Below, piece after piece: positions 168-27,700 of a stretch of DNA of 64,000 nt. Made by a program: the position numbers and the translations under genes. The stretch spans positions 62,001 through 126,000 of IMG/VR virus record IMGVR_UViG_3300035703_000008; one strand, 5' to 3'. The stretch's first letter is position 1; every line of letters begins with the position of its first letter. The notes beneath the pieces were generated by a model, which worked only from the letters and a program-made list of their open reading frames with translations, made no database searches and was not told where the DNA came from.

Positions 168-243
168 CCGACCGTAGCTCAGTGGATAGAGCATCTGCCT
201 TCTAAGCAGAGAGTCGCAGGTTCGATTCCTGCCGGTCGGGCCA
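168..243 (+). tRNA. tRNA-Arg(UCU)
   Basis: Acceptor CCGACCG/CGGTCGG, anticodon arm TCTGC-CTTCTAA-GCAGA, T-loop TTCGATT, encoded CCA. Confidence 0.96.
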
Positions 244-302
244 GTAAAAAGCATATTGCTACAAGTGCAAACAGATTTCGAGACGATGTCATATAATAAT
301 AC

Positions 303-425
303 ATGCGTTCAAAATCTGTCGTTCCTGTTGTTTTGCTCATACTCTTTGCCTTGGCTCTGATCGCTGTCGGCGAAGTCCTGGAGTGTGTGATGTTGATCAA
401 TCCCTATGAGACCTGGTGCGATTGA
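303..425 (+). CDS. small hydrophobic (single transmembrane helix) hypothetical protein, 40 aa
   Basis: Manual ORF MRSKSVVPVVLLILFALALIAVGEVLECVMLINPYETWCD* after a TATAAT box. Below the ORF-track cutoff. Confidence 0.4.
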   Translation: MRSKSVVPVVLLILFALALIAVGEVLECVMLINPYETWCD

Positions 426-450
426 TTTTGATCCACTGCCACACAAAGTT

Positions 451-456
451 TAAATA
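451..456 (+). promoter_or_regulatory. T4-like late promoter core (TAAATA) 5 nt upstream of the fpr ATG
   Basis: TAAATA-tccat-ATG. The same core recurs before many genes in the window. Confidence 0.55.
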
Positions 457-461
457 TCCAT

Positions 462-1202
462 ATGGCCACTTATACTCGTCAAACCGTTACCCATGTGCAT
501 CACTGGAGTGATCGCACCTTTACCTTTCGTTGCACACGTGATCGGTCATTCCGATTCGCTGCCGGTGAATTCGTCATGATCGGACTCGAAGTCGAGGGTC
601 GGGCCGTGCTGCGTGCCTATTCAGTGACCTCGGCGCCCTGGGAAGAAGAACTGGAGTTCCTGTCGATCAAGATCGCCGACGGCGAACTCACCAGCCGACT
701 ACAACACATACAAGTGGGCGATACCGTGTTGATCGGCGAACGTGCCACCGGTACGTTAAGGAACGAAGCTCTTGCGCCCGGGCGCGATCTCTGGATGCTG
801 GCCACTGGCACAGGACTGGCACCATTCATGAGCCTGATGCGTGACCTTGACACCATCGAGCGTTGGCAGCATCTACATGTGGTACACAGCGTGAGACATG
901 GCCAGGACTTGGCCTATCACAACCAGCTGGCGGAGGCCTTTGCCGGCGAAGACCTGCATGACTTGGTGGCCGCCAAACTGGTCTATCATCCAGTGGTCAC
1001 TGGCGAGGGTGCAGCTCGCATCGGCGATCAGCTCAAGTCAGGTCAGTTGGAGTTGGATCCTGATCAGGATCGTGTGATGCTGTGCGGCAATCTCGAGTTC
1101 AATCATGAACTGGCCGAATGGTGCCGCGGTGCAGGCATGACCGAGGGTTTGATGCGTAGGCCTGGTGGCTTCGTGCTGGAACGAGCCTTTGTGGAAAAAT
1201 AA
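462..1202 (+). CDS. fpr: ferredoxin/flavodoxin-NADP+ reductase (bacterial FPR type)
   Basis: HHWSDRTFTFRCTRD, GEFVMIGL, RAYS (FAD binding), GELTSRL, MLATGTGLAPFMS (NADP binding), MLCG and terminal ERAFVEK. Confidence 0.93.
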   Translation: MATYTRQTVTHVHHWSDRTFTFRCTRDRSFRFAAGEFVMIGLEVEGRAVLRAYSVTSAPWEEELEFLSIKIADGELTSRLQHIQVGDTVLIGERATGTLRNEALAPGRDLWMLATGTGLAPFMSLMRDLDTIERWQHLHVVHSVRHGQDLAYHNQLAEAFAGEDLHDLVAAKLVYHPVVTGEGAARIGDQLKSGQLELDPDQDRVMLCGNLEFNHELAEWCRGAGMTEGLMRRPGGFVLERAFVEK

Positions 1203-1213
1203 TAGATCTAGAT

Positions 1214-1287
1214 GCGGGTATGGTTTAATGGTAAAACGAAACCTTGCCAAGGTTTAGTTGCGAGTTCGATTCTCGCTACCCGCTCCA
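1214..1287 (+). tRNA. tRNA-Gly(GCC)
   Basis: Acceptor GCGGGTA/TACCCGC, anticodon arm AAACC-TTGCCAA-GGTTT, TTCGATT, T73 then CCA. Confidence 0.96.
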
Positions 1288-1293
1288 CGCTGG

Positions 1294-1322
1294 TTGACAT
1301 CTAAAACCCGATATTGTATACT
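1294..1322 (+). promoter_or_regulatory. sigma70-type promoter upstream of tRNA-Ser
   Basis: TTGACA-17 nt-TATACT. Confidence 0.75.
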
Positions 1323-1332
1323 AACAACAACT

Positions 1333-1423
1333 GGAGACGTGACCGAGAGGCCGAAGGTGCTCCCCTGCTAAGGGAGTATGCGCCAAAAGCGCATCGTGGG
1401 TTCGAATCCCACCGTCTCCGCCA
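1333..1423 (+). tRNA. tRNA-Ser(GCU)
   Basis: Acceptor GGAGACG/CGTCTCC, anticodon arm CTCCC-CTGCTAA-GGGAG, long variable arm, G73, CCA. Confidence 0.96.
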
Positions 1424-2504: not shown

Positions 2505-2579
2505 GCATCGTTAGCTCAGTGGTAGAGCAGGGCCCTTACAAGGCCAAGGTCGGGAGTTCGACCCTCTCACGATGCACCA
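2505..2579 (+). tRNA. tRNA-Val(UAC)
   Basis: Acceptor GCATCGT/ACGATGC, anticodon loop CTTACAA, TTCGACC, A73, CCA. G27-A43 mismatch. Confidence 0.92.
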
Positions 2580-2594
2580 GTCATACATAAACAT

Positions 2595-3911
2595 ATGAAT
2601 CGCAAAGACACCTTCTGTATACTGCCTTTTGTGGGCATGAACGTGCATATCAATGGAGGTCTCACTCCATGCTGTTATCAAGATCGCGGACCCGATGTCA
2701 AATATCGATTCCAAGACTACCAACAATGGCGCCAAGAAGGTCTCGCAGATCTTAAACGAGATCTCCTCACCGGAGTGAGAAACAGCCAATGTCGGCGATG
2801 CTGGGACGAAGAAGATGCCGGTGCTGACAGTTACCGACAGCAACACAACAAACAATACCCCAACCATCCAGCCTGGAAGATCGACGTCACTGAGCCGGGA
2901 TGGGAAAATCTCATCTATGATTTTCGCATGCTACATCTTGAATTTGACAGTCTTTGCAATCTAAGATGCATCATGTGTCACCCCACGGTGAGCACCAGTC
3001 TCGAGACTGAATACAAGCTCAATGCCGATCGATATCAGCCCTTTACCGGAATACTAAATTTTGAAAAAATCAAGTGGACCGAGACCGAACAATTTGAAAA
3101 ACTACTGTCGGCCTTGCAAAACGTAGACACTCTCATGGTCACCGGAGGCGAGCCTCTCACCAATCCCACATTCATACGACTGCTAAAGTCATTTCCCAAT
3201 CTCGAAGAACTCAATATATCAGTGACCACTAATGCCACTGTGATCAAGGACGATGTATACGAATTACTGAGTCGGGCCAAGACCAGTTCCATCACTGTGA
3301 GCTTGGAAGGCATTGGTGCCCACAACGATTATCTGCGGCACGGCAGCGACTGGGACACCGTGGATGCCAACATACAAAAACTGGCACAATTACCTAACTG
3401 GCGATGGATACCCATCAATATAGCCACTGTTTTACAATATACCAGTCTCTGGAGCTTGTCACCATTGATCGACTACTGTATAGAACGCGGCTACAATCTC
3501 CGGATCAACCATCTGCATCACCCTGACTATCTCACATTGTCGTGCATGGAAGACAAGGAACGCAAGAAATTCGTTGCCCAGCTACGCAAGAAATTCAAGG
3601 GACTTTATATAAGTCGTAGGGAGCCACGTGGCAAACAAATCACCTATGCCATAGACACCTTACTGAACACCGAATTTAATTCCAAATCTCGAGAAAAGTT
3701 TTTTTCTTATGTTGGCATGCTAGACAGCGTGAGAGGTACCAAGTTCCATGAAATATTTGACATCAACGAAAAGAGATCCAAATGTCAAAAATCAGTATCC
3801 CCGACGTCATTGAATTCGTCAATCAGCAAGGACCCAACACCCGCGTTTATCTCGGGGCCGATTCAGAACGATTCCGCGAACGCGGAGTCTGGTGGGCCGA
3901 ATACACCGTAG
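2595..3911 (+). CDS. radical SAM protein with an N-terminal twitch/SPASM-like Cys cluster
   Basis: CNLRCIMC, TGGEP, and N-terminal FCILPF...PCC...CRRC. The C-terminal tail overlaps the next gene by 130 nt. Confidence 0.88.
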   Translation: MNRKDTFCILPFVGMNVHINGGLTPCCYQDRGPDVKYRFQDYQQWRQEGLADLKRDLLTGVRNSQCRRCWDEEDAGADSYRQQHNKQYPNHPAWKIDVTEPGWENLIYDFRMLHLEFDSLCNLRCIMCHPTVSTSLETEYKLNADRYQPFTGILNFEKIKWTETEQFEKLLSALQNVDTLMVTGGEPLTNPTFIRLLKSFPNLEELNISVTTNATVIKDDVYELLSRAKTSSITVSLEGIGAHNDYLRHGSDWDTVDANIQKLAQLPNWRWIPINIATVLQYTSLWSLSPLIDYCIERGYNLRINHLHHPDYLTLSCMEDKERKKFVAQLRKKFKGLYISRREPRGKQITYAIDTLLNTEFNSKSREKFFSYVGMLDSVRGTKFHEIFDINEKRSKCQKSVSPTSLNSSISKDPTPAFISGPIQNDSANAESGGPNTP

Positions 3912-4252
3912 TGGTAGTGATACATATCAACGGCAACAACGGCTGCCGTATTTTCGGCGAAGTCACTAGAGAACGCGACTATGATCAACGGCAGGATCGT
4001 CCCAGCATGCGTCTCATGAACGAAGTATATCGTGTCAGTGAGCTGTTCCAGAATCTCGCACCAGCCCTGACAAATCGCGAAGTGGAAGTGCATCTTGACA
4101 TCAATCCCAACGAGCTGCATGGAAGTTCTTGCGTGATACAGCAAGCCATCGGCTATATAAGAGGTACCTGCAATGTGATCCCCATGGTCAAACCGCAGGC
4201 ATTCGCGGCCAGCTATGCAGCTGACCGATTCCGCAATCTCAAAGTAGCATAA
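3782..4252 (+). CDS. RNase H-like protein (YkuK/DUF458 family)
   Basis: VYLGADS, YTVVVVIH, RLMNEV, EVHLDINP, GSS, AADR motifs. Confidence 0.8.
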   Translation: MSKISIPDVIEFVNQQGPNTRVYLGADSERFRERGVWWAEYTVVVVIHINGNNGCRIFGEVTRERDYDQRQDRPSMRLMNEVYRVSELFQNLAPALTNREVEVHLDINPNELHGSSCVIQQAIGYIRGTCNVIPMVKPQAFAASYAADRFRNLKVA

Positions 4253-4262
4253 AGGAAACATC

Positions 4263-4499
4263 GTGGCCAGAATTACCAGCGAAACCGCTGCACAGAAAGT
4301 CGGTAGCAAATATGATCTCATCCTGATCGCGTCGCGACGTGCTCGCGAACTCAGACACGGACATGCACCCATGGTCGCTGCCGAAGACGACAACGAAGTG
4401 GTCATCGCTCTCAGAGAGATCGAACAAGGTCTTGTGGGTCGCGATTATCTTCTCAAGCAACCCGATCTCAAACACGAACCAAGGAAATCACGCACATGA
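4263..4499 (+). CDS. rpoZ: RNA polymerase omega subunit homologue
   Basis: MARIT...KYDLILIASRRAREL..GHAPMV...VVIALREIEQG matches the RpoZ pattern. GTG start with AGGA Shine-Dalgarno. Confidence 0.85.
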   Translation: MARITSETAAQKVGSKYDLILIASRRARELRHGHAPMVAAEDDNEVVIALREIEQGLVGRDYLLKQPDLKHEPRKSRT

Positions 4500-4651
4500 A
4501 AGCCAACAGCCAATATCGCATGAGCAAGCAATCAAAGATCTTCTTAGGCAATGCCTGGAATCGCAGGGATCGCGAACAGTATCGCCGGGCTTTGATCCAG
4601 GCCGAATTGGACAGCAAGATTGTAGTGCGAGCCAAAATCAAAGATAATTAA
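4496..4651 (+). CDS. small basic hypothetical protein, 51 aa
   Basis: Manual ORF MKANSQYRMSKQSKIFLG...KIKDN*, ATGA-coupled to the rpoZ stop. Confidence 0.6.
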   Translation: MKANSQYRMSKQSKIFLGNAWNRRDREQYRRALIQAELDSKIVVRAKIKDN

Positions 4652-4658
4652 AAGTATT

Positions 4659-4733
4659 GCTGGATTAGCTCAGGGGTAGAGCAACCGCCTTGTAAGCGGT
4701 AGGTCGTCAGTTCGAATCCGACATCCAGCACCA
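4659..4733 (+). tRNA. tRNA-Thr(UGU)
   Basis: Acceptor GCTGGAT/ATCCAGC, anticodon arm ACCGC-CTTGTAA-GCGGT, TTCGAAT, CCA. Confidence 0.96.
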
Positions 4734-4750
4734 TCCATCGAGGTACTCTC

Positions 4751-4906
4751 ATGCCCATCAAAGGACTCAAAGAAATCCTGGAAAAGAAACGCGGTAACAC
4801 CGTGCCCGGGGAGAAAACCCCCGATGCCACGGACCGTGGTCCGGCACCCAAGTCACCAGTGCAAAGCAACAAACCCGCTCGTCGCGCTGCGGGTCGAGGT
4901 CGTTAG
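4751..4906 (+). CDS. small basic, low-complexity hypothetical protein, 51 aa
   Basis: Manual ORF MPIKGLKEILEKKRG...KPARRAAGRGR*. AGGT upstream; the stop overlaps the next GTG. Confidence 0.55.
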   Translation: MPIKGLKEILEKKRGNTVPGEKTPDATDRGPAPKSPVQSNKPARRAAGRGR

Positions 4907-5934
4907 TGAGCTATCAAGAAACCTATCAAGGCGAGATCTTCGTCAAGAGCGGTTGCTTGGATCACGAATATCATCTCCTGGAAAGCATCAGAGCCATGCT
5001 GATCAAGGCTGGTTGGATCAGCCAAGATCCACGCCGCTTGATCTGGCAACGCGATCACCGACGTGCATGGTTGGCCATAGTAGACGACATCGAGTCCATA
5101 CCCGAACATTCGCACGAAGATTTCCTGGCCACTCTGGGGCACGATGATCTAGTGATCACCGACAACTTTATCGCACGTCCTGTCCGGGCCCGTGTGATCG
5201 AGCTGCCACGATCCTGGTTTGGCATCTATGCCTATCGGCCCGAGATCACTGTCGACGAGCCTGATCGCGACTATGGATTTGCTGTGAACCGCCTGGATGC
5301 CGTGCGTGCCCAGATACTCTTGGAGATGCAGCAGTGGCGCCACCTCAGTGGTGTACAAGGCTATGTGAATTTCAACTGTGCTAGCCATGCCCTGGACCAG
5401 ACCTATCAGCAAAAACGCGAGCTATGGGCACGGGTGTGCGAAGATCTGCGCGCCTGGCATGAAGATCGCTATGATCGAGCTATTCGCGACATTGATACCT
5501 TGATACCATTCCGCAACCACGACCTCGAGCTGGAGCAGGTCATGCAACGATCTTTGCTCAATGTCATCGTTGAGACCTACAGCAGCGACTACTCAGTGAG
5601 CGTGAGTGAAAAGATATTCCGCGCTTTGGTCACACCGCGACCATGGACCGTGTTTGGCGGCATGTGGACCGTGGCCCGACTGGAACAACTGGGCTTTGAT
5701 TGCGTGAGAGACATAGTGGATCACAAAACCGATGCCATGAAAAGCACCGAAGACCGCATCAAAGAATTCGTTCGCAACTCGGCCAATCATTGGCGCAGCC
5801 TGGTGTGGTCAGAAATCAAAGATCGCTGTGAACAGGCTGCACAACACAATCAAGCAGTGCTGGCCAGCATGCGTGAGCAGTGGCCCACAGATCAGGCCCG
5901 GTTCTTGCAAGAATTACAGCCGTTGCTGGCTTAA
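4906..5934 (+). CDS. glycosyltransferase-like protein (VIVET...SEKIF family, GT10-like motif)
   Basis: LNVIVETY...VSEKIFRAL..PRPW..FG......L.QLGFD, shared with the 30061, 31157, 38780 and 43590 paralogues. Confidence 0.6.
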   Translation: MSYQETYQGEIFVKSGCLDHEYHLLESIRAMLIKAGWISQDPRRLIWQRDHRRAWLAIVDDIESIPEHSHEDFLATLGHDDLVITDNFIARPVRARVIELPRSWFGIYAYRPEITVDEPDRDYGFAVNRLDAVRAQILLEMQQWRHLSGVQGYVNFNCASHALDQTYQQKRELWARVCEDLRAWHEDRYDRAIRDIDTLIPFRNHDLELEQVMQRSLLNVIVETYSSDYSVSVSEKIFRALVTPRPWTVFGGMWTVARLEQLGFDCVRDIVDHKTDAMKSTEDRIKEFVRNSANHWRSLVWSEIKDRCEQAAQHNQAVLASMREQWPTDQARFLQELQPLLA

Positions 5935-6488
5935 AAATCCCACTGCGACCAAGTCACAGGCCGGGCGCACCAATCTCGAGTAAACTGGAATTCCGGTGGT
6001 TGTCCAGCTAGATAGTTTTTTATCATGCGAGCTCGTTGGTCTTCGTCGTGCATGTGGTGGCTGGAATCTGGGTCTACGATCTCAATCCATTCCACAGGAT
6101 CACGGAAAATGTTGGTATTGGCGGGATTGGTAACGATCTCTACAGCACGGAATCCACAATAGTATCTGAGATCTTCCATGTCTTGTATCACGATGCCCTC
6201 GGGCTCGGCCAGTTGTGCCAGCACAGGCGCATGTGTACGACCCAATACATCCAGGGCCATCATGCGTGTATCGCCCACGATCACTTGCCAGTTGGCATCA
6301 ACAAAGATGGGTTTCCTGAGTCGATCTTGCCGGAGATTTTCTACCATCCAATTCAATCGCACGAGATTGATGCGGCTGTCACCGTGATTGGTGGGTTGAT
6401 TGGCCTGGGCTAACATCTGGTCCAGGACGCGCACAGGGCGTATGCGCTGCACGTCGCAGTGTTCGATCCAACACAGTGAAATAGTCAT
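5931..6488 (-). CDS. hypothetical protein with a ParB/sulfiredoxin-like N-terminal motif
   Basis: LRKPIFVDANWQVIVGDTRMMAL resembles ParB-N PIxV...IIDGHxRxxA. Confidence 0.55.
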   Translation of the reverse strand: MTISLCWIEHCDVQRIRPVRVLDQMLAQANQPTNHGDSRINLVRLNWMVENLRQDRLRKPIFVDANWQVIVGDTRMMALDVLGRTHAPVLAQLAEPEGIVIQDMEDLRYYCGFRAVEIVTNPANTNIFRDPVEWIEIVDPDSSHHMHDEDQRARMIKNYLAGQPPEFQFTRDWCARPVTWSQWDF

Positions 6489-6516
6489 TGACAGTGTCTC
6501 TTTGATTTGTTAGAAT
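6488..6516 (+). promoter_or_regulatory. sigma70-type promoter upstream of the RNA cluster/ssrA
   Basis: TTGACA-17 nt-TAGAAT. Confidence 0.65.
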
Positions 6517-6669
6517 AGTTATACACGATGCTGTGGTGTAAATAAAGAAGACTTCGCAGGGGGATGCGCCCGGCAGCTCTGGATCTATCTGCCGGAATCG
6601 TTTGCACGGTGAGACTCCGTGAGAACAGTGGCAGTTCCTACACGCCCTGGGAGATGCCATAAATAAGGT

Positions 6670-6962
6670 TTATCGCTGTATGAAGCGCGGCGAAATCGGT
6701 TCTGGACGCGGGTTCGATTCCCGCCCGGTCCACCATAAGCATGTTCTTTGAGGTCTTGGTCGTTACCAGCGTGGCAAAAACGGCGACAGAGCATGCTTAT
6801 GATGGGCCGGACCTGGTTTCGACAGGGCAAGGAGTAGCCAAGTGGACAGCGGGGTAGGCGATGACCCTAAATCAAGCAAAACCTATAAACGCCAATGATG
6901 AGGTGTTTGCACTGGCCGCTTGAGCCATGCCGGGGTAGCTATACCTTGTTACCAAAAATAGC
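6670..6962 (+). ncRNA. ssrA: circularly permuted (two-piece) tmRNA: acceptor piece ~6670-6735, intervening segment 6736-6803, coding piece from 6804; tag ANDEVFALAA*
   Basis: The 3' tRNA-like part (GCGGG-TTCGATT-CCCGC-CCGGTCC-A-CCA, ends 6735) lies before the 5' part (GGGCCGG-ACCTGGTTTCGAC, starts 6804). G3-U70 alanyl determinant. P2 pairing ACAGCGG/TCGCTGT. pk1 GGGT/ACCC plus TAGG/CCTA. Resume codon GCC at 6891, tag stop at 6923. Confidence 0.93.
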
Positions 6963-6988
6963 AAAACCCGCTCCGGCGGGTTTTTTTT
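6963..6988 (+). terminator. rho-independent terminator after ssrA
   Basis: AAAACCCGC-TCCG-GCGGG followed by T8. Confidence 0.88.
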
Positions 6989-7061
6989 GATTTCTTCTCC
7001 TGGCAGTTAAATACATGCCAGCAGCGCCACCATCCCGGTGACGTCGGTTCAACCTCGACGC

Positions 7062-7721: not shown

Positions 7722-8960
7722 ATGGACATCAAAACTCGCGTAAATCTTTCGTCGACCATGGGAGCAACATTTGCCTGGTACGATTTTGCTATCTTTAACA
7801 TCGCTGTGGCACTGATATTCCCCCAGCTGTTTTTCACGGGCATGGGTTTTCTCATCCCTGTATTGGTGTTTGCCGTAGGTACAGTGGCTCGCCCTTTGGG
7901 CAGCTTGGTTTTTGGCTACATCGGAGATCGGCTCGGTCGAAAAACAGCTTTGATATCTACCCTGTATCTCACTGGCATCACCACTGTGGCCATTGGCCTC
8001 ATGCCCACATATCAGGACATAGGCGTGATCGCCACTGTGCTGCTGATCACGGCTCGCTTGATACAGACCGTGGCCGTGGGAGGAGAATGGGCCGCGGCCT
8101 CGACCATGATGCTGGAATACAATGTGGAAAGTACCAGGAAAGGATTTATCTCCAGTTTTATCACTTCGGGATTCGCACTGGCACACATCCTCGCTTCCTT
8201 GGTTTTCATGATAGTCACGCAGTTCGGCGATGAATTCTTTGCCACTGTTGGCTGGAGGATTCCTTTCTTACTCAGCGCCTTCATGTTGTTGATCGGTGTA
8301 TATGTGCGTCGTAAAATCCTGGAAACTCCCGAGTTTGAGCAAATGAAATCCCAGGGAACCATACAAAAAAATCCAGTGGCTGCGCTGTTCAGGGATCATC
8401 TCAGGCCCATGGTAGTGGGTGCCTTGTCTGTGAGCCTAGGGCCTGCCTGGTTTTATACCCTGATCACTGCAGGATCAGCTTATGTGCTCAGCGCTGGACT
8501 ATTGACTCGGTCCGACCTCACTCAACAGCAGTTTGCGGCATGGTGGGTGATACTGGGCATCATGTTGTTGTGTGGATGGCTGATCGACAAAGTCAAGCCC
8601 TACTACATGTTTGTGGCCACTTCGGTGTTTTCAGTCATATTGGCCTTGCCAGTGATCGGTTGGCTGCAGCAAGGGCAAATTTTGTGGGCCATGGTAGGCA
8701 CTGGGGTGATCATGACCCCGGCACTGATGACAGCTCCTTATCTTTTTTGCAAAATGTACCCGGCGCCGGTTCGACAAACCGGTAGCGGATGGACCTATGG
8801 CATAGGACTGGCATTGTCGGGACTGTTTACGGTGCTGGCACAAAAAGTGGTGGGCACCACCGGTGATATCTACTCGCTGATCTATGTGTTTGGAGTGTTG
8901 ACTGTGATCACTTTGGTTACCGGCGGACTTTACCTGAGAAAGTACAGCCAAGAATCATGA
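7722..8960 (+). CDS. MFS transporter, metabolite:H+ symporter (MHS; ShiA/ProP-like)
   Basis: GATFAWYDFAIF, ARPLGSLVFGYIGDRLGRK, GGEW, GWRIPF, ETPEF; about 12 hydrophobic segments. Confidence 0.92.
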   Translation: MDIKTRVNLSSTMGATFAWYDFAIFNIAVALIFPQLFFTGMGFLIPVLVFAVGTVARPLGSLVFGYIGDRLGRKTALISTLYLTGITTVAIGLMPTYQDIGVIATVLLITARLIQTVAVGGEWAAASTMMLEYNVESTRKGFISSFITSGFALAHILASLVFMIVTQFGDEFFATVGWRIPFLLSAFMLLIGVYVRRKILETPEFEQMKSQGTIQKNPVAALFRDHLRPMVVGALSVSLGPAWFYTLITAGSAYVLSAGLLTRSDLTQQQFAAWWVILGIMLLCGWLIDKVKPYYMFVATSVFSVILALPVIGWLQQGQILWAMVGTGVIMTPALMTAPYLFCKMYPAPVRQTGSGWTYGIGLALSGLFTVLAQKVVGTTGDIYSLIYVFGVLTVITLVTGGLYLRKYSQES

Positions 8961-10414
8961 TGCTGATAGATCTCTTACTGAATCACCCCAATGGTGATCA
9001 TATCGTATATCGTGGCACTGGTGTGGTGACCGTGAGAGATCTACAAACCATGTGCCAAAGCACTGCAAGATCTCTCAGAGACATGAATGTCGGTCCCGGG
9101 GATCGAGTGGTACTGATCGGCAATGACAGCGCTGAATGGGCTGCTACATTTTGGGCTCTTGTGCTGTTGGGAGCCCACGCTGTGATCCTACATGCAAATA
9201 TGCCGCAAGAACACGTGAACAACGTGATAAAAAAGCACCGAGTCAAACTGGTTTGCACAGATCAATCGAGATTCGACGATGTCGCTGTTTTTGACATAAA
9301 GTCAAAGGTTAAATCGAACATCGGACAGCCGATCGCACCATTTGATCATAAATCAAACACGCTGCTGAGCTGGCCTTCGTCGGGCACCAATGGCACATTC
9401 AAGCTCATCGAACATACCAATGCCAGTTTATGTGCGGCTACAATGTCTCTGGATAATTATGCATCCAGTCGCGAGGTACATCGCGGGGACGTGATTTTTT
9501 GCGGTGCCAAGATGTCGTTTGGCCTAGGATGGCTGTTCAATGTGCTGGGATGTTTGCACTTGCATATCACATCAGTGATTGGTACCGGCCTTGCAGAGTT
9601 GCGTAGTTTTTCGGCGATCGCCGAAAAACATCAGGTACAACATGTGGTAGTCACCCCTTACATATTAGACATCATACACAGAACATCCATGTGCCTTCCT
9701 GACAGTGTCAGGACTATATGTACCAGTGCGGAACCATTGCCTGATCGATTGATTGCGGACATAAAACAAAAATTTTCAATTGATGTAACAAACATCTACG
9801 GTCTTTGTGAATTGTTTATCGTGACCATGGCCGACCAAGATCGATCTTCCAACAGTGCTGGAAAGGTTGTCAACGGAGTAAATTATCGTTTGATCAGCGA
9901 TGATGGAAATGTTATCGGCCTGACTGGATGCGGAATCTTGCAGATCAAAAGTGGATCACAATTTGTTGGCTATCTCGATGACCCGGAATCTACTCGACAG
10001 GTGCTAAGAGATGGTTGGGTACATACCAACGACATGGTCGATGTGCTCGAGGACGGAGAAGTGATTTTCCTAGGGCGAGCCAATTCATGTATAAAAGTCA
10101 AAGGTCATTGGGTATCTTTGCTAGAAATCGAGCAGGCGATATCTCAGATCAGTGGTATCAATGATTGTGTGGTAGTAAAATCCACAGACTCTCAGGGATT
10201 CGATTCGATTTCAGCTTTTGTAGTCGTCGACAACAATTCTGATCTGAGATGTGTGGACACGATCAGAGATCGCCTGAGACGTGATCTAGGTAAAAAATAT
10301 CTCATGCCTTCAGACATATATCTCATCGATGAGATTCCTCGCACAGTGAATCTCAAAAAACTTCGTAATATTTCAGCCATGAATCAATGGCTAGAACAAA
10401 GGAACATGATATGA
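8957..10414 (+). CDS. AMP-forming acyl-CoA ligase (ANL adenylating enzyme), copy 1
   Basis: P-loop variant SSGTNGTFK, YGLCE, GWVHTND, GRANSCIKVKGHWVSLLEIE, IPRTVNLKKLR. ATGA-coupled to the MFS gene. Confidence 0.87.
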   Translation: MMLIDLLLNHPNGDHIVYRGTGVVTVRDLQTMCQSTARSLRDMNVGPGDRVVLIGNDSAEWAATFWALVLLGAHAVILHANMPQEHVNNVIKKHRVKLVCTDQSRFDDVAVFDIKSKVKSNIGQPIAPFDHKSNTLLSWPSSGTNGTFKLIEHTNASLCAATMSLDNYASSREVHRGDVIFCGAKMSFGLGWLFNVLGCLHLHITSVIGTGLAELRSFSAIAEKHQVQHVVVTPYILDIIHRTSMCLPDSVRTICTSAEPLPDRLIADIKQKFSIDVTNIYGLCELFIVTMADQDRSSNSAGKVVNGVNYRLISDDGNVIGLTGCGILQIKSGSQFVGYLDDPESTRQVLRDGWVHTNDMVDVLEDGEVIFLGRANSCIKVKGHWVSLLEIEQAISQISGINDCVVVKSTDSQGFDSISAFVVVDNNSDLRCVDTIRDRLRRDLGKKYLMPSDIYLIDEIPRTVNLKKLRNISAMNQWLEQRNMI

Positions 10415-11862
10415 ACTTTGCTGAATTTATTTTTGATCGGGTACGAAATCATGCTGGTGTGGCCTATTATTGCGGCGACCAGCAACTGTTGTTTCGAGAC
10501 CTCGAACCCCGAGTGAGAGAAACTGCTGGCTTCCTTGGCAGCCAGGGTGTGGATCATCACAGCACTGTGATGATCAATCTTCCCAACAGCCCCGAGTGGC
10601 CGGTGATATTTTATGCTCTTACCTTACTGGGTGCCCGGATCATGGTCACCCATGCCAATCTCGATCCGATCAGCCTCAAAACCATCGCTGCCAGGATCAA
10701 GTCCACACACATCATCGCTGTGACTGAGCGGGATCTAGGTCCGATCAATGTGTTGCTAGAACACATAACACATGACAGATCGGGATTTTTTTACAACGGC
10801 AGTCATGACTACAACGATGATGATCTGCACTTCATGATCACCACATCGGGCACCAGCGGTCGGCAGAAGATCGTCAAGCATCGCCATATTTCTTGTGTGA
10901 ATCTTTGTCGCGAGTTTGACCGTCGTGAAACCATCTATCAGGACCTCGATGAGTCGTCGGTGATCCTGTGTACAGCTAATCTAAACTTTCTCTACGGTCT
11001 TGGCACCTGTGTTTGTCTAGGTCCCAGCCAGGGTGTGCCCACCGTGATCTTCGACCAAACTCTCACTCCCAAAAATATCATCGGGTTGGCCAATCGATTC
11101 CGAGTCACACATCTGTTCAGTGGCCCAGCTGGGTACATGCTGATGACCAAGTATCCCGGAGACGACCTCCTACCCGACTCTGTCAAGTGTTGCGTGTCCG
11201 GCGGAGAGAAACTGCTGGCCAGCGTGTCCAGAGAATTTGAAAACAAGTTTGGACATCGAGTCTACGACTGCATCGGATGCAGCGAGTTGTTTTGGTTTTT
11301 TCTCGGGGAATGGTCTGGCAACATCAGATCCGGCAGCATGGGTCGGCCTTTCCCCGGGCACGATATCAAGGTGGTCAATGCCGACGGTACTCCGTGTCCG
11401 GTTGGCGAAATTGGCTACCTTGTGGTCAAGACCAACGTGATCAGTGCTGGTTATTTTGACGATGCTGAAGGCAACAGATTCAGCTTCCGCGACGGATGGT
11501 TTTGGACCAATGATCTCGTCAAGGTTGACGAGGATGGATACTTCTTTTATCTGGGCCGGCACGGACAACTGCACAAGGTGCACGGGATCTGGGTCAATCT
11601 CCTGGAAGTGGAAGACTATGTGAGTGCCTTGCCGGAAATCACCGACTGCCTGGCCAAGTTCGTGATCGACGATCGTGGACTGGTCGAAGTGGAAGCACAG
11701 GTAGTGACATCTCTGCAGGAGCCAGCAGCTGACATACGCCGTCGGCTACTGGAGATAGTTCCGCCCTGCCAGATGCCAAAATTTGTTACCTTGGTCAATG
11801 AAATACCTCGCACCATGAACGGCAAAAAAATACGTGATCTCGCTATCATCAATCAATCATGA
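10411..11862 (+). CDS. AMP-forming acyl-CoA ligase, benzoate-CoA-ligase-like, copy 2
   Basis: TTSGTSGRQK, YDCIGCSE, GSMGRPFPG, DGWFWTNDL, KVHGIWVNLLEVE, IPRTMNGKKIR. Start taken at the ATGA overlap (10411) rather than the ORF-track start 10387. Confidence 0.88.
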   Translation: MNFAEFIFDRVRNHAGVAYYCGDQQLLFRDLEPRVRETAGFLGSQGVDHHSTVMINLPNSPEWPVIFYALTLLGARIMVTHANLDPISLKTIAARIKSTHIIAVTERDLGPINVLLEHITHDRSGFFYNGSHDYNDDDLHFMITTSGTSGRQKIVKHRHISCVNLCREFDRRETIYQDLDESSVILCTANLNFLYGLGTCVCLGPSQGVPTVIFDQTLTPKNIIGLANRFRVTHLFSGPAGYMLMTKYPGDDLLPDSVKCCVSGGEKLLASVSREFENKFGHRVYDCIGCSELFWFFLGEWSGNIRSGSMGRPFPGHDIKVVNADGTPCPVGEIGYLVVKTNVISAGYFDDAEGNRFSFRDGWFWTNDLVKVDEDGYFFYLGRHGQLHKVHGIWVNLLEVEDYVSALPEITDCLAKFVIDDRGLVEVEAQVVTSLQEPAADIRRRLLEIVPPCQMPKFVTLVNEIPRTMNGKKIRDLAIINQS

Positions 11863-12590
11863 TCAAATCGCGCCCTTTGATTTTCATCGGTTCTCGATAC
11901 TACATGAACGATCTAGCCATCACAGCCGAGCTCATGGGTCTGGAAGTGCTGGGAATACTGGATCATCAGTATCACGGCAACACCGACGAAATTTCGAGCA
12001 TACCAGTGATCGGCAGCGATCACTGGTTGCTGGATCCCGAGAATCGAGAAGCACGAGTCTGGAAAAACACCTGTGATTTTTTTGTAGCCACACTGGACAC
12101 CGGTGAGCAAGAACGTGATCCAGCGAAAAATCGCACTCGACTCCGACAACAACGAATCAACATGCTCGAAGAGCTGGCACTTGGCACTGTCAATCTCATT
12201 GATCCTGAATCGCGCATCGTGCGCGATCAACGGTCGAGATTCTCACGTATCTCTCTGGGTCGCGGCATTTATGTGGCTCCGTTCGTGGACATCAATCACG
12301 AAGTAGTGATAGGCGACTTTTCCACCTTTGAGCATCAGAGCTATATCGGACATCATATCACCATCGGCAAGAACGTCACAGTATTGCCCACTGCTCGTAT
12401 ATGCCACTGCGACATCGGTGATCACGCTGTGATTGGCTACGGGTCCTGGACTAGACACGACGAACGCAAGAGTCGCTATCGTATAGGTTCTAGAAGCACA
12501 GTGTGGAGCCACACCTGTATCGATCGAAGCTGCCCCGACGATCATGTCTATACCAATGTTGGTAAGATTTTACGGAAAAGATCGGTATAG
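11859..12590 (+). CDS. NeuD/PglD-like sugar acyltransferase (left-handed beta-helix)
   Basis: N-terminal Rossmann-like LIFIGS...LEVLGILD, then hexapeptide repeats (ISLGRGIYV, VVIGDFSTF, ITIGKNVTV, CDIGDHAVIG). ATGA-coupled. Confidence 0.8.
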   Translation: MIKSRPLIFIGSRYYMNDLAITAELMGLEVLGILDHQYHGNTDEISSIPVIGSDHWLLDPENREARVWKNTCDFFVATLDTGEQERDPAKNRTRLRQQRINMLEELALGTVNLIDPESRIVRDQRSRFSRISLGRGIYVAPFVDINHEVVIGDFSTFEHQSYIGHHITIGKNVTVLPTARICHCDIGDHAVIGYGSWTRHDERKSRYRIGSRSTVWSHTCIDRSCPDDHVYTNVGKILRKRSV

Positions 12591-15625: not shown

Positions 15626-16717
15626 ATGTCAGTAGAACATCGCACCGTAACCGCGTTTGGTGCCCGCAAAGCCATCGTCAAAGCATTCAAAGTACAACGC
15701 CCAGTATTCCTTTGGGGACCTCCTGGTATTGGTAAAAGCGAAGTGGTAGCAGACATCGCTGAGAGCATGGGCGGTCTCATGATTGACCTACGCCTAGGCC
15801 AGATGGATCCCACCGACATACGAGGTATCCCTTTCTACAATCGCGACACTGGGCGCATGGAATGGGCTCCACCTGTGGATCTGCCTGATGCCGAAATGGC
15901 CAGTCAGTATCCCATCATCGTACTGTTCATGGACGAGATGAACTCGGCGCCACCTGCAGTACAGGCCGCTGCCTATCAGCTGGTGCTCAATCGCAGGATT
16001 GGCAAGTATGTGCTGCCTGACAATGTGGTGATGATTGCCGCAGGTAATCGCGAGAGCGACAAAGGTGTCACATATCGCATGCCAACTCCCTTGGCCAATC
16101 GCTTCATCCATGTGGAGATGCGAGCAGACTTTGCCGCTTGGCAGGAATGGGCAGTGAGAAATGGTGAGCACAAGGACGTGGTTGGTTACCTCAGCTTTGC
16201 CAAGCAAGATCTCTATGATTTTGATGCCCGTAGCATCAGCCGCAGTTTCGCCACGCCACGTTCTTGGCATTTTGTCAGTGAACTGCTCAAAGACGAGGAT
16301 CTCGATGATGTCACTGCCACCGATCTCATCGCCGGTACTGTAGGCGAGGGCTTGGCTGTCAAGTTCATGGCACATCGCAAAATCTCAGGCAAGTTACCAC
16401 AGCCCGAGGACATCCTGTCCGGCAAAGAGACCGGGCTTGAAGTCAAAGAAGTTTCAGCCATGTACAGTCTGGTGATCAGCCTCTGCTACGAGCTCCAGGA
16501 CGCCTTGCAAGTGAAAAAGGTCACTGACAAAGAGTTCCATGTCATGGCTGATAATTTCTTTGCCTACATGATGAAGAACTTTGAGACTGAGATCGTTGTC
16601 ATGGGTGCCAGGATCGCACTGACCACATACAATCTGCCGTTCCAGCCCACCAAGCTCAAGAACTTTGACGAGTTCCATCAGCGTTACGGCAAGTACATCC
16701 TCCAGGCCAATAACTAA
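15626..16717 (+). CDS. MoxR-like AAA+ ATPase
   Basis: Walker A GPPGIGKS, Walker B LFMDEMN, AAGNRESD, PLANRF, TPRSW. Confidence 0.9.
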   Translation: MSVEHRTVTAFGARKAIVKAFKVQRPVFLWGPPGIGKSEVVADIAESMGGLMIDLRLGQMDPTDIRGIPFYNRDTGRMEWAPPVDLPDAEMASQYPIIVLFMDEMNSAPPAVQAAAYQLVLNRRIGKYVLPDNVVMIAAGNRESDKGVTYRMPTPLANRFIHVEMRADFAAWQEWAVRNGEHKDVVGYLSFAKQDLYDFDARSISRSFATPRSWHFVSELLKDEDLDDVTATDLIAGTVGEGLAVKFMAHRKISGKLPQPEDILSGKETGLEVKEVSAMYSLVISLCYELQDALQVKKVTDKEFHVMADNFFAYMMKNFETEIVVMGARIALTTYNLPFQPTKLKNFDEFHQRYGKYILQANN

Positions 16718-18337: not shown

Positions 18338-19627
18338 ATGACCACTGCCGCTAGTACACAGAACAAAGACGAAGCCAAAAAATTTGCCAATCTCATAGGT
18401 CCCATGGACCCGAAACTGGACCGTGAGGTGCGTGAGCTTTTGGTCACTGCACGTGTGGGCATGTTATTAAGGGCCAGCTTCTTTGGCAATCTGGCCACTC
18501 GCCTGCGCCTAGTCAATGCCGATGAGTGGTGTGCCACTGCAGCCACCGATGGCAGGAATTTCTACTATAACAGTCGCTTCATCAAGATGTTGCGTCCCAA
18601 AGAGATCGAGTTCTTGTTTGGACACGAGGTCTTGCATTGCGTTTATGACCACTTTGGTCGCAGGGGTGAACGGGATCCACAGCTCTGGAACATCGCCAAT
18701 GACTATTGTGTGAACTCTGATCTTAAAAAACATCGCGTAGGTGAGTTCATCACATCAGTACCTTGTCTCTATGATGCCAAATACGATGGTATGAGCAGTG
18801 AACAGGTCTACGACCATCTCTACGAGAATGCCGAAAAGATTGACATCAATGATCTTATTGATCGCATGATTGATGACCATCTGGATCAGGAAGATGAGGA
18901 CAATGATAGTGGTACCAGTTCCAGCGACGGCAAAAAAGAAGGAGCCAGTCGTCCCAAACCCATGAGCGCCGAAGAGCGTGCTCAACTCAGGGACGAGATC
19001 AAAGAAGCCGTGCTCAGTGCCGCACAGACCTGCGATGCTGGAAATCTGCCAGCGGGTGTGAAACGCATGATCCAGGATCTCACTGATCCCAAAATGGACT
19101 GGCGCGAGCTCCTGCGCATGCAACTGGAGAGCACCATCAAGAGCGATTTCACTTGGCAACGGCCCAGCCGCAAGAGCTGGCACATGGAAGCCGTGATGCC
19201 GGGCATGCGAAACAATGACATGATTGATATCGCTGTGGCCATTGACATGTCGGGATCAATTTCAGATGTACAAGGGCGTGACTTCCTCAGCGAAGTACAA
19301 GGCATCATGTCCCAGTTTGAAAGCTATCGCATCCATGTGTTTTGCTTTGACACCGAAGTCTACAACCCACAAAAGTTTGACTCCGACAATCTCGATGACA
19401 TCGCTGACTATGAACTCAAGGGCGGCGGCGGTACTGACTTTGACGCTATCTTCAACTACCTCAAGCAAGAAGAGATTGAGCCTCGACGCTTGGTGGTATT
19501 CACAGACGGCTATCCATTTGGTTCATGGGGAGATGCCAACTACTGCGACACTGTATGGGTCATACACGGCAACCCCAATCCTGATCCTCCCTTTGGTGTA
19601 TGGGTTGAATATCAGGAAAAAGCCTGA
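18338..19627 (+). CDS. DUF2201-type metallopeptidase-like plus vWA domain protein (AAA+ partner)
   Basis: TAATDGRNFYYN, HEVLH (HExxH), MIDAS-type VAIDMSGS, GGGTDF, VFTDGY. Confidence 0.88.
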   Translation: MTTAASTQNKDEAKKFANLIGPMDPKLDREVRELLVTARVGMLLRASFFGNLATRLRLVNADEWCATAATDGRNFYYNSRFIKMLRPKEIEFLFGHEVLHCVYDHFGRRGERDPQLWNIANDYCVNSDLKKHRVGEFITSVPCLYDAKYDGMSSEQVYDHLYENAEKIDINDLIDRMIDDHLDQEDEDNDSGTSSSDGKKEGASRPKPMSAEERAQLRDEIKEAVLSAAQTCDAGNLPAGVKRMIQDLTDPKMDWRELLRMQLESTIKSDFTWQRPSRKSWHMEAVMPGMRNNDMIDIAVAIDMSGSISDVQGRDFLSEVQGIMSQFESYRIHVFCFDTEVYNPQKFDSDNLDDIADYELKGGGGTDFDAIFNYLKQEEIEPRRLVVFTDGYPFGSWGDANYCDTVWVIHGNPNPDPPFGVWVEYQEKA

Positions 19628-23670: not shown

Positions 23671-24739
23671 TACCCTGAGGTCAGAGATCCTTGACATCAC
23701 TGACCAGGTGTTGAGGTCAGGTCAAGTGATGTCTGGCAACTACACTGCCGAGTTCGAGCATTGGCTGGCACGCAAGAATAGATCAAAATTCGCGATCACG
23801 TGTCATTCTGGAACACAGGCCTTGGAGATCATCGCCGAGTTTTATCGTCAGCACTGGCCCTGCGATCCAGGACACACTCCCACGGTGGTCATGCCCAGCA
23901 TTTCTTATGTGGCCACTGCCAATGCATTTGTTCGAGCTAGATGGGATATAAGATTCGCTGATGTTGATGCCCATGGCATGCTTTCACTCAAGGACGTGCC
24001 CAACGATTCTCTCACACACTGGAATGCCATCTGCTTGGTGGGCTTGTATGGCCAGAGTGTGTATCAGTATTCAGACACACAGTTTTGGAAAAGTGTGCGA
24101 TACAAAAATCAAATCGTGATCGAGGATGGCGCCCAACATTGGCTCAGTGCCGGATCTTCGCGCATAGGGCATGCCACTGCCATAAGTTTTGATCCTACCA
24201 AAAATCTCGGCAACTACGGAAACGGTGGGGCGGTAGTCACCGACGACGAGGATCTAGCTACATTTGCACGAGCTTGGTGCGCGAATGGCAAGCCATATTA
24301 TCGCCAACCGGGCACCAACAGTAGGATGAGCGAAATAGATTGTGCCCAGATGTTGGTAAAAGTCAATCACTTGGACCAATGGCAGGTCCGTCGCCGGCAT
24401 ATCACTGAATACTGGTATAGTCGGCTGGCAGGAAAACGACAGGTGCGTAGTCTTGCAGATCTATCCAACATGGATACCCACTGTTTCCATAAATTTGTGA
24501 TTGATGCTGATCACAGGAATGACCTGCAAAGACATCTAAAAGAACACGGAATAGAAACTCGTGTACACTATGACCAGGCCTTGTTTGAACATGCTGGACT
24601 GAGTCAATTCATCAACCCCGGTGTGCTAAGTTCAGCGGCTTCGTTGTGTCGTCGTGTACTGAGCTTGCCACTCTACCCCGAACTCACGGATCTAGAAGTA
24701 GACTACATCATCGACCAGGTGATAGATTTCTCTTCATAA
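23612..24739 (+). CDS. DegT/DnrJ/EryC1/StrS-family PLP-dependent sugar aminotransferase
   Basis: SGTQAL, VATANA, IEDGAQ, SFDPTKNLGNYGNGG (PLP lysine), GTNSRMSE, VLSLPLYPEL. Confidence 0.93.
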   Translation: MKTTTAGLRIPFAGLPRQYNTLRSEILDITDQVLRSGQVMSGNYTAEFEHWLARKNRSKFAITCHSGTQALEIIAEFYRQHWPCDPGHTPTVVMPSISYVATANAFVRARWDIRFADVDAHGMLSLKDVPNDSLTHWNAICLVGLYGQSVYQYSDTQFWKSVRYKNQIVIEDGAQHWLSAGSSRIGHATAISFDPTKNLGNYGNGGAVVTDDEDLATFARAWCANGKPYYRQPGTNSRMSEIDCAQMLVKVNHLDQWQVRRRHITEYWYSRLAGKRQVRSLADLSNMDTHCFHKFVIDADHRNDLQRHLKEHGIETRVHYDQALFEHAGLSQFINPGVLSSAASLCRRVLSLPLYPELTDLEVDYIIDQVIDFSS

Positions 24740-27700
24740 ATGCATAGCTGGCCAACCAGGCCCACTCGTAGCTTTTCCTGAGCTGTTCAAAATCCCCACC
24801 GACTTCTTCGTAGTAGGCCACGGCATCTTCGGCTCCCCACACTGACCATTCGCCGTAGGGTCCTTCTCCACCAGTGAGCCAGGCACGGAGACGATATTCG
24901 TTTTCTACGTCAGGCAGACTGGCTCGTAGTTTGATCGCTTCGCGGAAGGCCGTGCGCCACGCAGTCCAGGCATCGGTGTTGTAGCGAGCCACACCCGACA
25001 TGATGGGCACTACTTCGTGTGCATCGTCTAGTGTGAAGTCCAAGCCACGACCGGGATTGGCCAACACCAGGTTCTTGTTGTAGGCGATCATGGCCTGGTG
25101 TCCATAGATCAAGCGATTCACAGGATTCCTAGCATGGAAGATGTAGTGCTTGGGCTGTTGCATGCGATCCGGCTGCCATGACCAGTCAAAGTCTGGATTC
25201 ACATCCAACTTGGCAAACACAGCAAAGAACCAAGGCGTTTCACTGGCTCGAGCAGCGGCATGATAAGCAGCAGCACGGCCCGGCACTCGATCCACTCGCA
25301 CCAAGCGGTTGGGTTGGCCTTGTTTGCGCAACATCAGGCTGCCCCAGTTTCGGTCAGCTTGGGGTTCTCCATTGGAGATGTAGACGATGTCCAAGGGCTG
25401 GCCTTTTAGTGTGTCGCGATGGCTGCGATCGATGTGGGGATAATCGTACATCTGTGTTCGAATGTAAGGTACAGCATTCTTGGGCACCACCACTACGCCA
25501 GCACCGGGATCCATGGGAATGATGGTCTTGGTCTTTTCTCTCCAGAGACTCACTGTGGGCATCTTGGCGTTGCCCACATCTCTGTTGGCGAACACGGCCA
25601 AGGGTCCCGAGAACGTGCTCGAGATCACTGTGTCCACATGCGTGTCCTGATCATTGCGGATCACTGGCATGGGCCAACGCGGTACTCTCTGATCTTCGCA
25701 GTAGTTCACGGTCTCAAACCAATCTAGCAGTTCCAGTTCGTTGATCTTGTCTCTCAACGCCCGCACAGGCACATAGAATGTGTCACCGAATTTCTGTTCC
25801 GCACTGGGGAACACGTGCAGCATGTCACGTTGCCAGGCTTCGGGTTGCCACGAGAAATCAAATCTCGAATAGTCGCATACACTGCCCGTCACCCATATGT
25901 GTTCGGCTTCGACGTCGGCGATCAAGCGTTTTAGAGTGTCAAGATAATTATCAAAGTATCTCGCGGTCTTGACCACGCGATAGCGACCCTGCAGGAACTC
26001 AATGGTCTTTGGTGCTTCGGCATTGCCAAAATCTATCACATAGATGTCCGAGGCATCGGCAGGTGCTACCACTTGTTGATCCTGCACAAAATTAAGATTG
26101 GGAAACTCTTCTATGCCCGCAGCCCACTTGGCGTGCCGCTCGAACTCCCAGCGATTGATCAGGAATGTGTCCGACCATTTGTTCCACTGGCTACCAAACA
26201 CGTGAGTCATGAAGCTCTGCCAGGGCTGTGCGTGCCAAGCGAAATCAAAGTCTGAGTAGTCGTTTTCGCTGCCTATGACCCAGAATCTCATGCTCTTGGT
26301 CTTGGTGAGACAGCGTTGTATGGTGTCCATCACAGAATTTACATAACGCACTTTTTGTATGTGAGGATACTGTTCGCGAAGGCGTTCAAACCTCGACGCG
26401 CTCATGGCATTGCTGCGATCCATGTAAAAAATATCCAATACACGCACCACGGATTGAGGCTGTTCTTGGATGATCTGTGGAGGATCGCCGGCAAACTTGA
26501 GATCTTGGGCTCCGGGCACAGTGTAGGTGAGTCCCACTGATGCTTGATATTCTGTACCGAAGTGGTAGATATAAGGCGGCTCTTGTGGGTCGGGTATCCA
26601 TGAATAGTCGATGACATCGGCATCTACTTCTTCGGGCACTGACCATCGCGCGCGATCAGGCAAGATGCGGGCCAGTGGTTCGGTCATGAACTTGCGCTCA
26701 GTGGCACCTGGCACATGATATTCAATGGTGCTCATCTGTGTGGCAGGCCACCACTGGTTGCCAAACACATAGATGTAAGGCGGTGAGCCAGGATCGGGCC
26801 GCCAGGAACGATCAAACTCGAACACATGATCAGTAGTCACTTGCCAACACTGATCGGTGGCAACAAGACGTGCCTGCGGTTCAGACATGAATTTGCGTTC
26901 TGTTGCCCCAGGAACGCGATATTCTACCGTGGGCATGATCTCTGCAGGCCACCACTGATTGCCGAACACATAGATGTAAGCGGGCGATCCAGGATCGGGT
27001 TCCCACGAGTAGTCAAACTCGCAGTCATAATGCGTGACGAACTCGTTGGGTCTGGCTGCGCGTCGTGCTCGCGGTTCCGACATGTACTTGATCTCTGTGG
27101 CTCCAGTCACACGATACTGCAAGGCCGGACGTTGTTCAGGTGTGAGCCATTGGTTACCAAACACATAGACGTAGGCGGGATCTGTGGGATTTGGGCGCCA
27201 CGAATAATCAAACTCTTCGATGTCATCCAACTGCTCCCAGGCCGAGACATCCTGTGCTAGAGTGGCCACCGGTTCTGCCATGTACTTGATCTCAGTGCCA
27301 CCTGTGTTGTATACCACAGTGGGTTCCAGCACAGCAGGGTTCCACTGGTTGCCAAACACATAGGTCATGGGAGGATCAAAGGGATTGGGTTCCCACGAGT
27401 AATCAAAGTCGCTGACAGCGAGATTGTGGCCAAACAACGCAGGCTGCGGCAGTCTGCGTGTGCGTGTGTCCATGTACTTGACTTCGGTGGCACCCGGTAC
27501 CGTATATCGCACACTGGCTTTGTATTCAGCCGGGTTCCACTGGTTGCCCCACACATAGATGTAGGCCGGATCCCGAGGATTGGGTCGCCAGGTCCAGTCC
27601 CAATCCTCTTCGGCTATGGGTTCGAGGATTTCCCAGTGATCGCGCGATTCTGACAACTGCGCTCGCGGTTCATCCACGAACTTTTCTTGAGTCGCTCCAG

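Follow-up and report, generated by a model that had tools for sequence, protein, structure and literature searches.

A virus-specific homologue of the RNA polymerase omega subunit encoded in the tRNA/tmRNA island of jumbo phages

A jumbo bacteriophage in which we could recognize no RNA polymerase (RNAP) carries a well-conserved, virus-specific version of omega, the smallest subunit of the bacterial enzyme, suggesting that these phages refit the host's transcription machinery. The gene lies in a 64,000-nt stretch of DNA (hereafter, the window) that corresponds to bases 62001-126000 of a 208,932-bp IMG/VR virus record (IMGVR_UViG_3300035703_000008). An earlier note, based on sequence alone, described the gene as a phage-encoded omega subunit retaining an N-terminal MARIT sequence and located in an island with tRNAs and tmRNA; that observation proved correct in every detail. 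The note's interpretation, that the phage could swap omega on host RNAP to change stringent-response sensitivity or sigma-factor competition, with the island pointing to coordinated control of stress signalling, is only partly supported, as discussed below.

The ORF comprises 78 codons plus a stop codon and begins with GTG. An in-frame TAG at 4245-4247 rules out a longer reading, and relatives have ATG at the homologous position behind the same AGGA box. The product, which begins M(GTG)-A-R-I-T-S-E, exceeds the curated cut-offs of both family models: PF01192 (RNA_pol_Rpb6; E 5.2e-16, 58.8 bits versus a cut-off of 26) and the NCBIfam equivalog TIGR00690 rpoZ (59.5 bits versus 23.6). It matches E. 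coli omega chains in the PDB at E about 1e-14 (residues 2-63 to 2-64), aligning to E. coli omega residues 2-64 with one gap and about 48% identity. An AlphaFold2 model built from 25 relatives (mean pLDDT 81.8) has helices at residues 7-13, 16-31, 45-54 and 60-64; the top 50 Foldseek hits in the PDB are all omega chains, with E. coli omega giving a TM score of 0.71 and an rmsd of 1.8 A over 62 residues. The features of the locus are listed in Table 1.

Table 1. Features of the omega locus and its surroundings (window coordinates)
Position	Strand	Feature	Basis
168..1423	+	tRNA-Arg(TCT) at 168-243, tRNA-Gly(GCC) at 1214-1287 and tRNA-Ser(GCT) at 1333-1423, with a ferredoxin-reductase-like ORF between them	ARAGORN, Rfam, Pfam
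1294..1322	+	Sigma-70-type promoter-like site (TTGACA-17-TATACT, 11 of 12) just before tRNA-Ser	Consensus scan only
2505..2579	+	tRNA-Val(TAC), upstream member of the island	ARAGORN, Rfam
3782..4252	+	156-aa PF04308 RNase H-like protein (phrog_11311, function unknown), ending 10 nt before rpoZ	PF04308 at E 5.8e-16; phrog_11311 at 1.3e-53
4253..4257	+	Shine-Dalgarno-like AGGAA, 5 nt before the GTG start	Read from the sequence
4263..4499	+	rpoZ-like gene, 78-aa phage-type omega subunit (stop included)	Profile, sequence and predicted-structure matches (see text)
4496..4651	+	51-aa basic ORF overlapping the rpoZ stop by ATGA (translational coupling)	No Pfam, PHROG or NCBIfam match
4659..4733	+	tRNA-Thr(TGT), 160 nt after rpoZ	ARAGORN, Rfam
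6488..6516		Second promoter-like site (11 of 12), before the tmRNA	Consensus scan only
6634..7014	+	Permuted (two-piece) tmRNA gene with tag ANDEVFALAA, closing the island	RF01850 at 155 bits, RF04321 at 134 bits; ARAGORN tmRNA*

The source record is a myovirus-type jumbo phage, rated by CheckV as about 60% complete (of a ~350-kb genome). PHROG profiles identified a baseplate wedge (1.3e-284), baseplate hub, portal (1.9e-104), virion proteins, tail sheath (1.5e-212), large terminase (TerL; 2.9e-118) and a family-B DNA polymerase (1.6e-193). By terminase, the nearest cultured phages are the PA5oct group of Pseudomonas jumbo phages (52%), followed by Sinorhizobium phage Phosso and Agrobacterium phage Atu_ph07. 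Profile searches for beta' (PF04997, PF00623) and beta (PF00562) found nothing in this record or in four to five relatives of 316-353 kb that are 91-100% complete, one of which has terminal repeats, and no sigma-70 region-2 domain was found in the record or its near-complete relatives. A search for a T7-type RNAP (PF00940) also returned nothing, but its control genomes were equally silent, making that result uninformative. Omega is thus an orphan core subunit in a phage that appears to rely on host RNAP, although a polymerase too divergent for Pfam cannot be strictly excluded.

The gene is not a stray host fragment. A word-indexed search returned 497 proteins; the 120 examined are 57-100% identical and nearly all 74-85 aa long, and all 120 carry two phage-type motifs, RxRE[LI] and G[RK][DE]YL, while none carries the bacterial motifs. 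Six of these were traced to contigs of up to 342 kb, and each lies in the same phage setting, with omega followed by an overlapping 51-55-aa ORF and with a MoxR-type AAA ATPase and a VWA/DUF2201 gene a few kb downstream. A scan of IMG/VR found 71 loci encoding a relative, including the near-complete genomes described above; the phage identity of the shorter contigs rests on IMG/VR's classification and on their tRNA arrays. Pairwise dN/dS is 0.07-0.21, with synonymous sites near or at saturation, indicating strong purifying selection.

Bacterial omegas are clearly more distant. Among 401 sampled genomes of the GTDB class that holds Candidatus Contendobacter (one of which is unpublished and enters only into this count), 383 have one omega match each, the best being 52% identical. 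Against 1.84 billion cluster representatives, bacterial-type hits reached only about 50-55% identity, and about 49 of the top 150 representatives are of the phage type. A maximum-likelihood tree of 91 sequences places all 33 bacterial omegas on one side of a branch with 100/100 support and a length of about 1.2 changes per site, and all 55 phage-context sequences, plus three contigs binned into Bacteroidota MAGs, on the other. One of those MAG contigs is 183 kb and carries 19 tRNA genes beside its omega, and is therefore probably a misbinned jumbo phage. Because phage omegas form their own clade, the use of this phylogeny to predict the host, as had been proposed at the outset, fails; the beta-type permuted tmRNA is only a weak hint of a betaproteobacterial host.

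Column statistics over 159 phage-type and 118 bacterial sequences revealed both a shared core and a set of phage-specific changes. Eighteen positions are conserved at 80% or more in both sets (M1, A2, R3, T5, E7, L19, L21, A23, R26, R28, G33, A49, L50, R51, E52, I53, G56 and L63, in the numbering of the window's protein). The phage type has near-invariant S6 (V in bacteria), A9 (C, or C/A, in bacteria), Y17 (F), E29 (Q) and E54 (A/E), and has gained an invariant block, G59-R60-D/E61-Y62-L63-x-K65. It has lost the bacterial N43-D44-K45-x-T47 loop motif, in which D44, K45 and T47 are 92-96% conserved in bacteria but the same positions are variable in phages. The tail after L63 is short and carries a net charge of +4 (positive in all 159 phage sequences), whereas the bacterial tail is long and carries a charge of -6 (negative in 90% of sequences). 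The new block lies in the C-terminal conserved region (CR3) near which dominant-lethal E. coli omega mutants such as omega6, N60D, map; those laboratory point mutants poison RNAP, binding core more tightly and disturbing initiation (PMC7700224), whereas the phage block is a natural, conserved sequence whose effect would have to be inferred. The MAR N-terminus is retained in the window's group, in which 105 of 121 sequences begin MARIT, and MAR (or MGR) is present in 42 of 54 distinct phage loci. It is replaced, or preceded by an extension, in the other 12 loci and in most of the more distant phage-type representatives (only 15 of 49 have it).

The genomic setting of the gene is also conserved. 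The source genome has 13 tRNAs and the permuted, beta-type tmRNA within 49-69 kb, with omega between tRNA-Val and tRNA-Thr, rather than in the gmk-rpoZ-spoT neighbourhood typical of cellular proteobacterial rpoZ. In 52 of 54 distinct phage loci a tRNA or tmRNA lies in the flanking DNA examined, often within 400 nt, with up to 33 tRNAs in 10 kb. In one complete relative of 352,754 bp, all 29 tRNAs and the tmRNA lie at 120.4-137.1 kb and omega at 134.9 kb, while only 7.6% of that genome lies within 5 kb of a tRNA. The loci are related and are therefore not 54 independent events, but their immediate neighbours differ between lineages, indicating that the association has survived rearrangement. 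A homologue of the PF04308 gene, 55-92% identical across loci, lies within the flank on the same strand in 20 of 54 loci, usually directly upstream; no solved structure related to it by sequence was found. The 51-aa ORF is conserved directly downstream in the window's subclade and is found in 9 of 54 loci. No terminator-like site separates the PF04308 gene, omega, the 51-aa ORF and tRNA-Thr.

Together, these results lead us to favor, with reasonable though not full confidence, the view that the gene encodes a functional, virus-specific omega that most likely binds the host's beta' subunit at the normal omega site and becomes part of host core RNAP during infection, either replacing host omega or filling enzymes that lack it. 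Our data establish membership in the omega family, a predicted omega fold, retention of the shared core residues, strong purifying selection, a long independent history inside phages, the absence of recognizable phage catalytic subunits and the fixed place of the gene in the tRNA/tmRNA island. Binding to host beta', expression, and any effect on ppGpp response or sigma choice are, by contrast, inferences, as are the ideas that the phage-specific block, basic tail and lost loop motif change how the subunit sits on RNAP or what it recruits, and that the enzyme is thereby kept assembled and biased towards phage transcription units such as the heavily transcribed tRNA array. A complex prediction with E. 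coli beta' residues 340-660 and 1240-1407 scored 0.35 against a best control of 0.01 (runs agreed in at least 53% of contacts; partner pLDDT at least 62), a level rated as weak support only, which few solved complexes reached but which was reached by all four of the mismatched pairs that passed, and which may reflect the model's memory of solved structures of RNAP from E. coli, which is not the host. Loss of the loop motif means that the beta' interface may differ from that in bacteria, and because rpoZ deletion has mild phenotypes in E. coli, the selective benefit of supplying omega is not obvious. The phage might gain an RNAP that stays assembled and stable through a long infection, an enzyme whose behavior changes because phage omega out-competes host omega through the new C-terminal block, or a phage-specific docking surface.

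The proposal in the earlier note that phage omega specifically alters ppGpp or sigma-factor control remains possible but doubtful. In its favor are the conserved MARIT of the window's group, the contribution of omega Ala2, Arg3 and Val4 to ppGpp site 1 (PMC10191844, PMC7676912), MazG-like genes in three of four near-complete relatives, and the location of the gene among tRNA genes, tRNA promoters being classical ppGpp targets in bacteria. However, the site-1 contacts are made through the omega main chain, and retention of MAR predicts a site that is probably preserved in this lineage rather than altered or destroyed, while the absence of MAR elsewhere makes it unlikely to be the family's defining function. 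In E. coli, moreover, site 1 is tied to elongation, backtracking and transcription-coupled repair and is dispensable for the stringent response at initiation (PMC10191844), so stringent-response sensitivity is not the obvious read-out. Coordinated control of stress signalling has no direct support, as searches of the phage genomes found no RelA/SpoT or DksA/TraR homologue. A role as a docking adaptor is likewise tentative: the invariant block and uniformly basic tail could recruit a phage factor, with the coupled 51-aa protein and the PF04308 protein, whose gene is adjacent across deep divergence, as candidates, or the tail could contact nucleic acid. There is precedent in GafA, which acts through omega in the Rhodobacter gene transfer agent (PMC9638019), but neither neighbor is universal and adjacency alone is weak evidence.

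The remaining alternatives are less likely. Subunit poisoning, in which phage omega would bind beta' more tightly than host omega and inhibit host transcription, draws on the position of the phage block in the region of the dominant-lethal mutants, but no phage RNAP was found in five genomes, so the phage appears to need an active host enzyme, and sigma-70-type promoter-like sites precede phage tRNA and tmRNA genes. A subunit of an undetected, highly divergent phage RNAP is very unlikely: some phiKZ-type jumbo phages encode RNAPs too divergent for standard models, and many large ORFs here have no annotation, but four Pfam beta and beta' domain models found nothing in five genomes even at E <= 0.1-1, the nearest cultured relatives are T4-like rather than phiKZ-type jumbo phages, phage multisubunit RNAPs are not known to include omega, and 48% identity to proteobacterial omega fits a proteobacterial beta'. 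Finally, a functionless passenger, host-DNA contamination or an assembly chimera is refuted by the recurrence of the gene in the same phage context in many independent assemblies, by its separate clade with its own invariant motifs, and by dN/dS. Contamination does occur in other records: of 50,697 GenBank phage records (GenBank/INPHARED), nine gave an rpoZ hit, none a relative of the phage-type omega; most look like host DNA, judged by size or label, or short fragments, and the one inspected, 'Acinetobacter phage MD-2021a', is a mislabelled bacterial gmk-rpoZ-spoT contig.

The phage protein therefore shares its predicted fold, length class, core and MAR N-terminus with proteobacterial RpoZ, but differs in its signature residues, tail and genomic setting. 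PHROGs has no omega family, and our full-text literature searches, which did not cover all journals, found no paper describing a phage-encoded omega, although JGI's automatic annotation already names some of these genes as omega. T4 Alt/ModA, AsiA, MotA and gp55/gp33, T7 Gp2, Xp10 P7 and phage-encoded sigma factors presumably serve the same aim of redirecting or stabilizing host RNAP for phage transcription, but they are phage-invented binders or enzymes, or sigma factors, whereas this protein is a homologue of a core-enzyme subunit. In the Rhodobacter gene transfer agent, a phage-derived element that depends on omega to select promoters, omega is the host's own and the element supplies the activator; here the phage supplies the omega. 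Huge phages also carry host-like tRNAs, tmRNA, ribosomal proteins and translation factors, and omega shares an island with the phage tRNAs and tmRNA, but it would act on transcription, not translation.

Omega is the least understood subunit of bacterial RNAP, and its roles in assembly, ppGpp sensing, sigma competition and elongation are still debated. A virus-specific lineage that has kept the core of the protein while systematically changing one loop, one C-terminal motif and the charge of the tail is a natural mutagenesis experiment showing which parts of omega matter, in a protein small enough and close enough to E. coli omega to be approached in standard laboratory systems. It also suggests a route of host takeover that has not been described, in which a core subunit is replaced instead of an inhibitor, a modifying enzyme or a sigma factor being added. 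A more far-reaching and tentative possibility is that phage-type omega is an old, widespread viral subunit family, a standard part of the tRNA/tmRNA island of many large phages and often paired with a PF04308 gene, that displaces host omega through its C-terminal motif and basic tail and converts host RNAP into a phage-adapted enzyme with, for example, altered elongation, pausing or ppGpp behavior, or a new docking surface, favoring transcription of the phage tRNA array and other phage genes; this would be the first case of a virus replacing a core subunit of bacterial RNAP with its own homologue. The tight link to phage tRNA/tmRNA islands and to the PF04308 gene gives further handles on how large phages organize expression of their translation-related genes.

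We found that a PF04308 RNase H-like gene of unknown function (phrog_11311) travels with phage omega across deep divergence. It occurs at the window's locus and at 20 of 54 related loci (L039, L075 and L086 are examples), is usually directly upstream of omega on the same strand, and is better conserved (55-92%) than omega itself, although a sequence search identified no solved relative. On the other side of omega, a 51-aa basic ORF overlaps the omega stop codon by ATGA. This ORF is conserved in the window's subclade, was found in 9 of 54 loci, and has no family match; on position alone, it could be a partner of omega.

The phage also carries a permuted (two-piece) tmRNA of the betaproteobacterial type with tag ANDEVFALAA, as do the complete relative G407 and many related loci. 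In the window it is accompanied by a strong sigma-70-like promoter match and a terminator-like hairpin. Further downstream of omega, a MoxR-type AAA ATPase (phrog_1297) and a VWA/DUF2201 protein are conserved a few kb downstream of omega in all relatives examined. The second of these proteins is labeled as an HNH endonuclease by PHROGs, whereas the Pfam hits on relatives indicate DUF2201/VWA.

Coordinates of features near phage omega, elsewhere in the window, and in other records
Sequence	Coordinates	Strand	Feature
Window	462-1202	+	Ferredoxin-NADP reductase-like gene
Window	2595-3911	+	Radical SAM, outside the main run
Window	3782-4252	+	PF04308 RNase H-like gene
Window	4496-4651	+	51-aa basic ORF
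Window	6488-6516		Sigma-70-like promoter match
Window	6634-7014	+	Permuted tmRNA
Window	6963-6984		Terminator-like hairpin
Window	7722-12590	+	Metabolic cassette
Window	15626-16717	+	MoxR-type AAA ATPase
Window	18338-19627	+	VWA/DUF2201 protein
Window	24708-30062	-	Giant ORF, 1,784 aa
Window	34103-35584		Carbamoyltransferase (NodU/CmcH-like, phrog_1601)
Window	37483-46122	-	Radical SAM run
Window	52632-63983	-	Giant ORF, 3,783 aa
L039 (related locus)	4517-4984		PF04308 gene
L075 (related locus)	4531-4998		PF04308 gene
L086 (related locus)	5240-5695		PF04308 gene
L012 (related locus)	5178-6428		Radical SAM
G407 (complete relative)	about 136.7 kb		Permuted tmRNA
L133 (Haliscomenobacter-labeled MAG)	G001:C1:122000-141999		Omega-match locus
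L019/L100 (same MAG)	G001:C90		Omega-match loci
L152 (GenBank record)	CAKLQH020000003.1:147712-153909		gmk-rpoZ-spoT region

A MAG labeled Haliscomenobacter (Bacteroidota) holds three omega matches, two of which are of the phage type, one of them on a 183-kb contig with 19 tRNA genes beside it. These are probably jumbo-phage contigs that were binned with the bacterium, an association that may hint at the host of that phage. The GenBank record named 'Acinetobacter phage MD-2021a' carries pilus genes, ispH and gmk-rpoZ-spoT, and is a bacterial chromosome contig filed as a phage.

Beyond the omega locus, the window encodes two giant ORFs. The larger has FG-GAP repeats and a faint DUF2460 match, and may therefore be a tail or fiber protein, whereas the smaller has no family match at all. 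Radical SAM genes are unusually numerous: at least five lie in a row at 37-46 kb, with others elsewhere in the genome and in relatives, and a carbamoyltransferase lies next to them. This arrangement looks like a modification or biosynthesis module.

Just after the tmRNA, an MFS transporter, two AMP-binding (acyl-adenylate-forming) enzymes and a hexapeptide-repeat transferase lie in a row, forming a metabolic cassette that is odd for a phage; it is present at the related locus L004 but is replaced by other genes at two further related loci, L002 and L005. Lastly, a ferredoxin-NADP reductase-like gene (FAD_binding_6 + NAD_binding_1) sits between tRNA genes, and AhpC/Redoxin and CMD genes lie near omega in relatives (L002 and the related loci L016 and L018), indicating that redox genes also live in this island.
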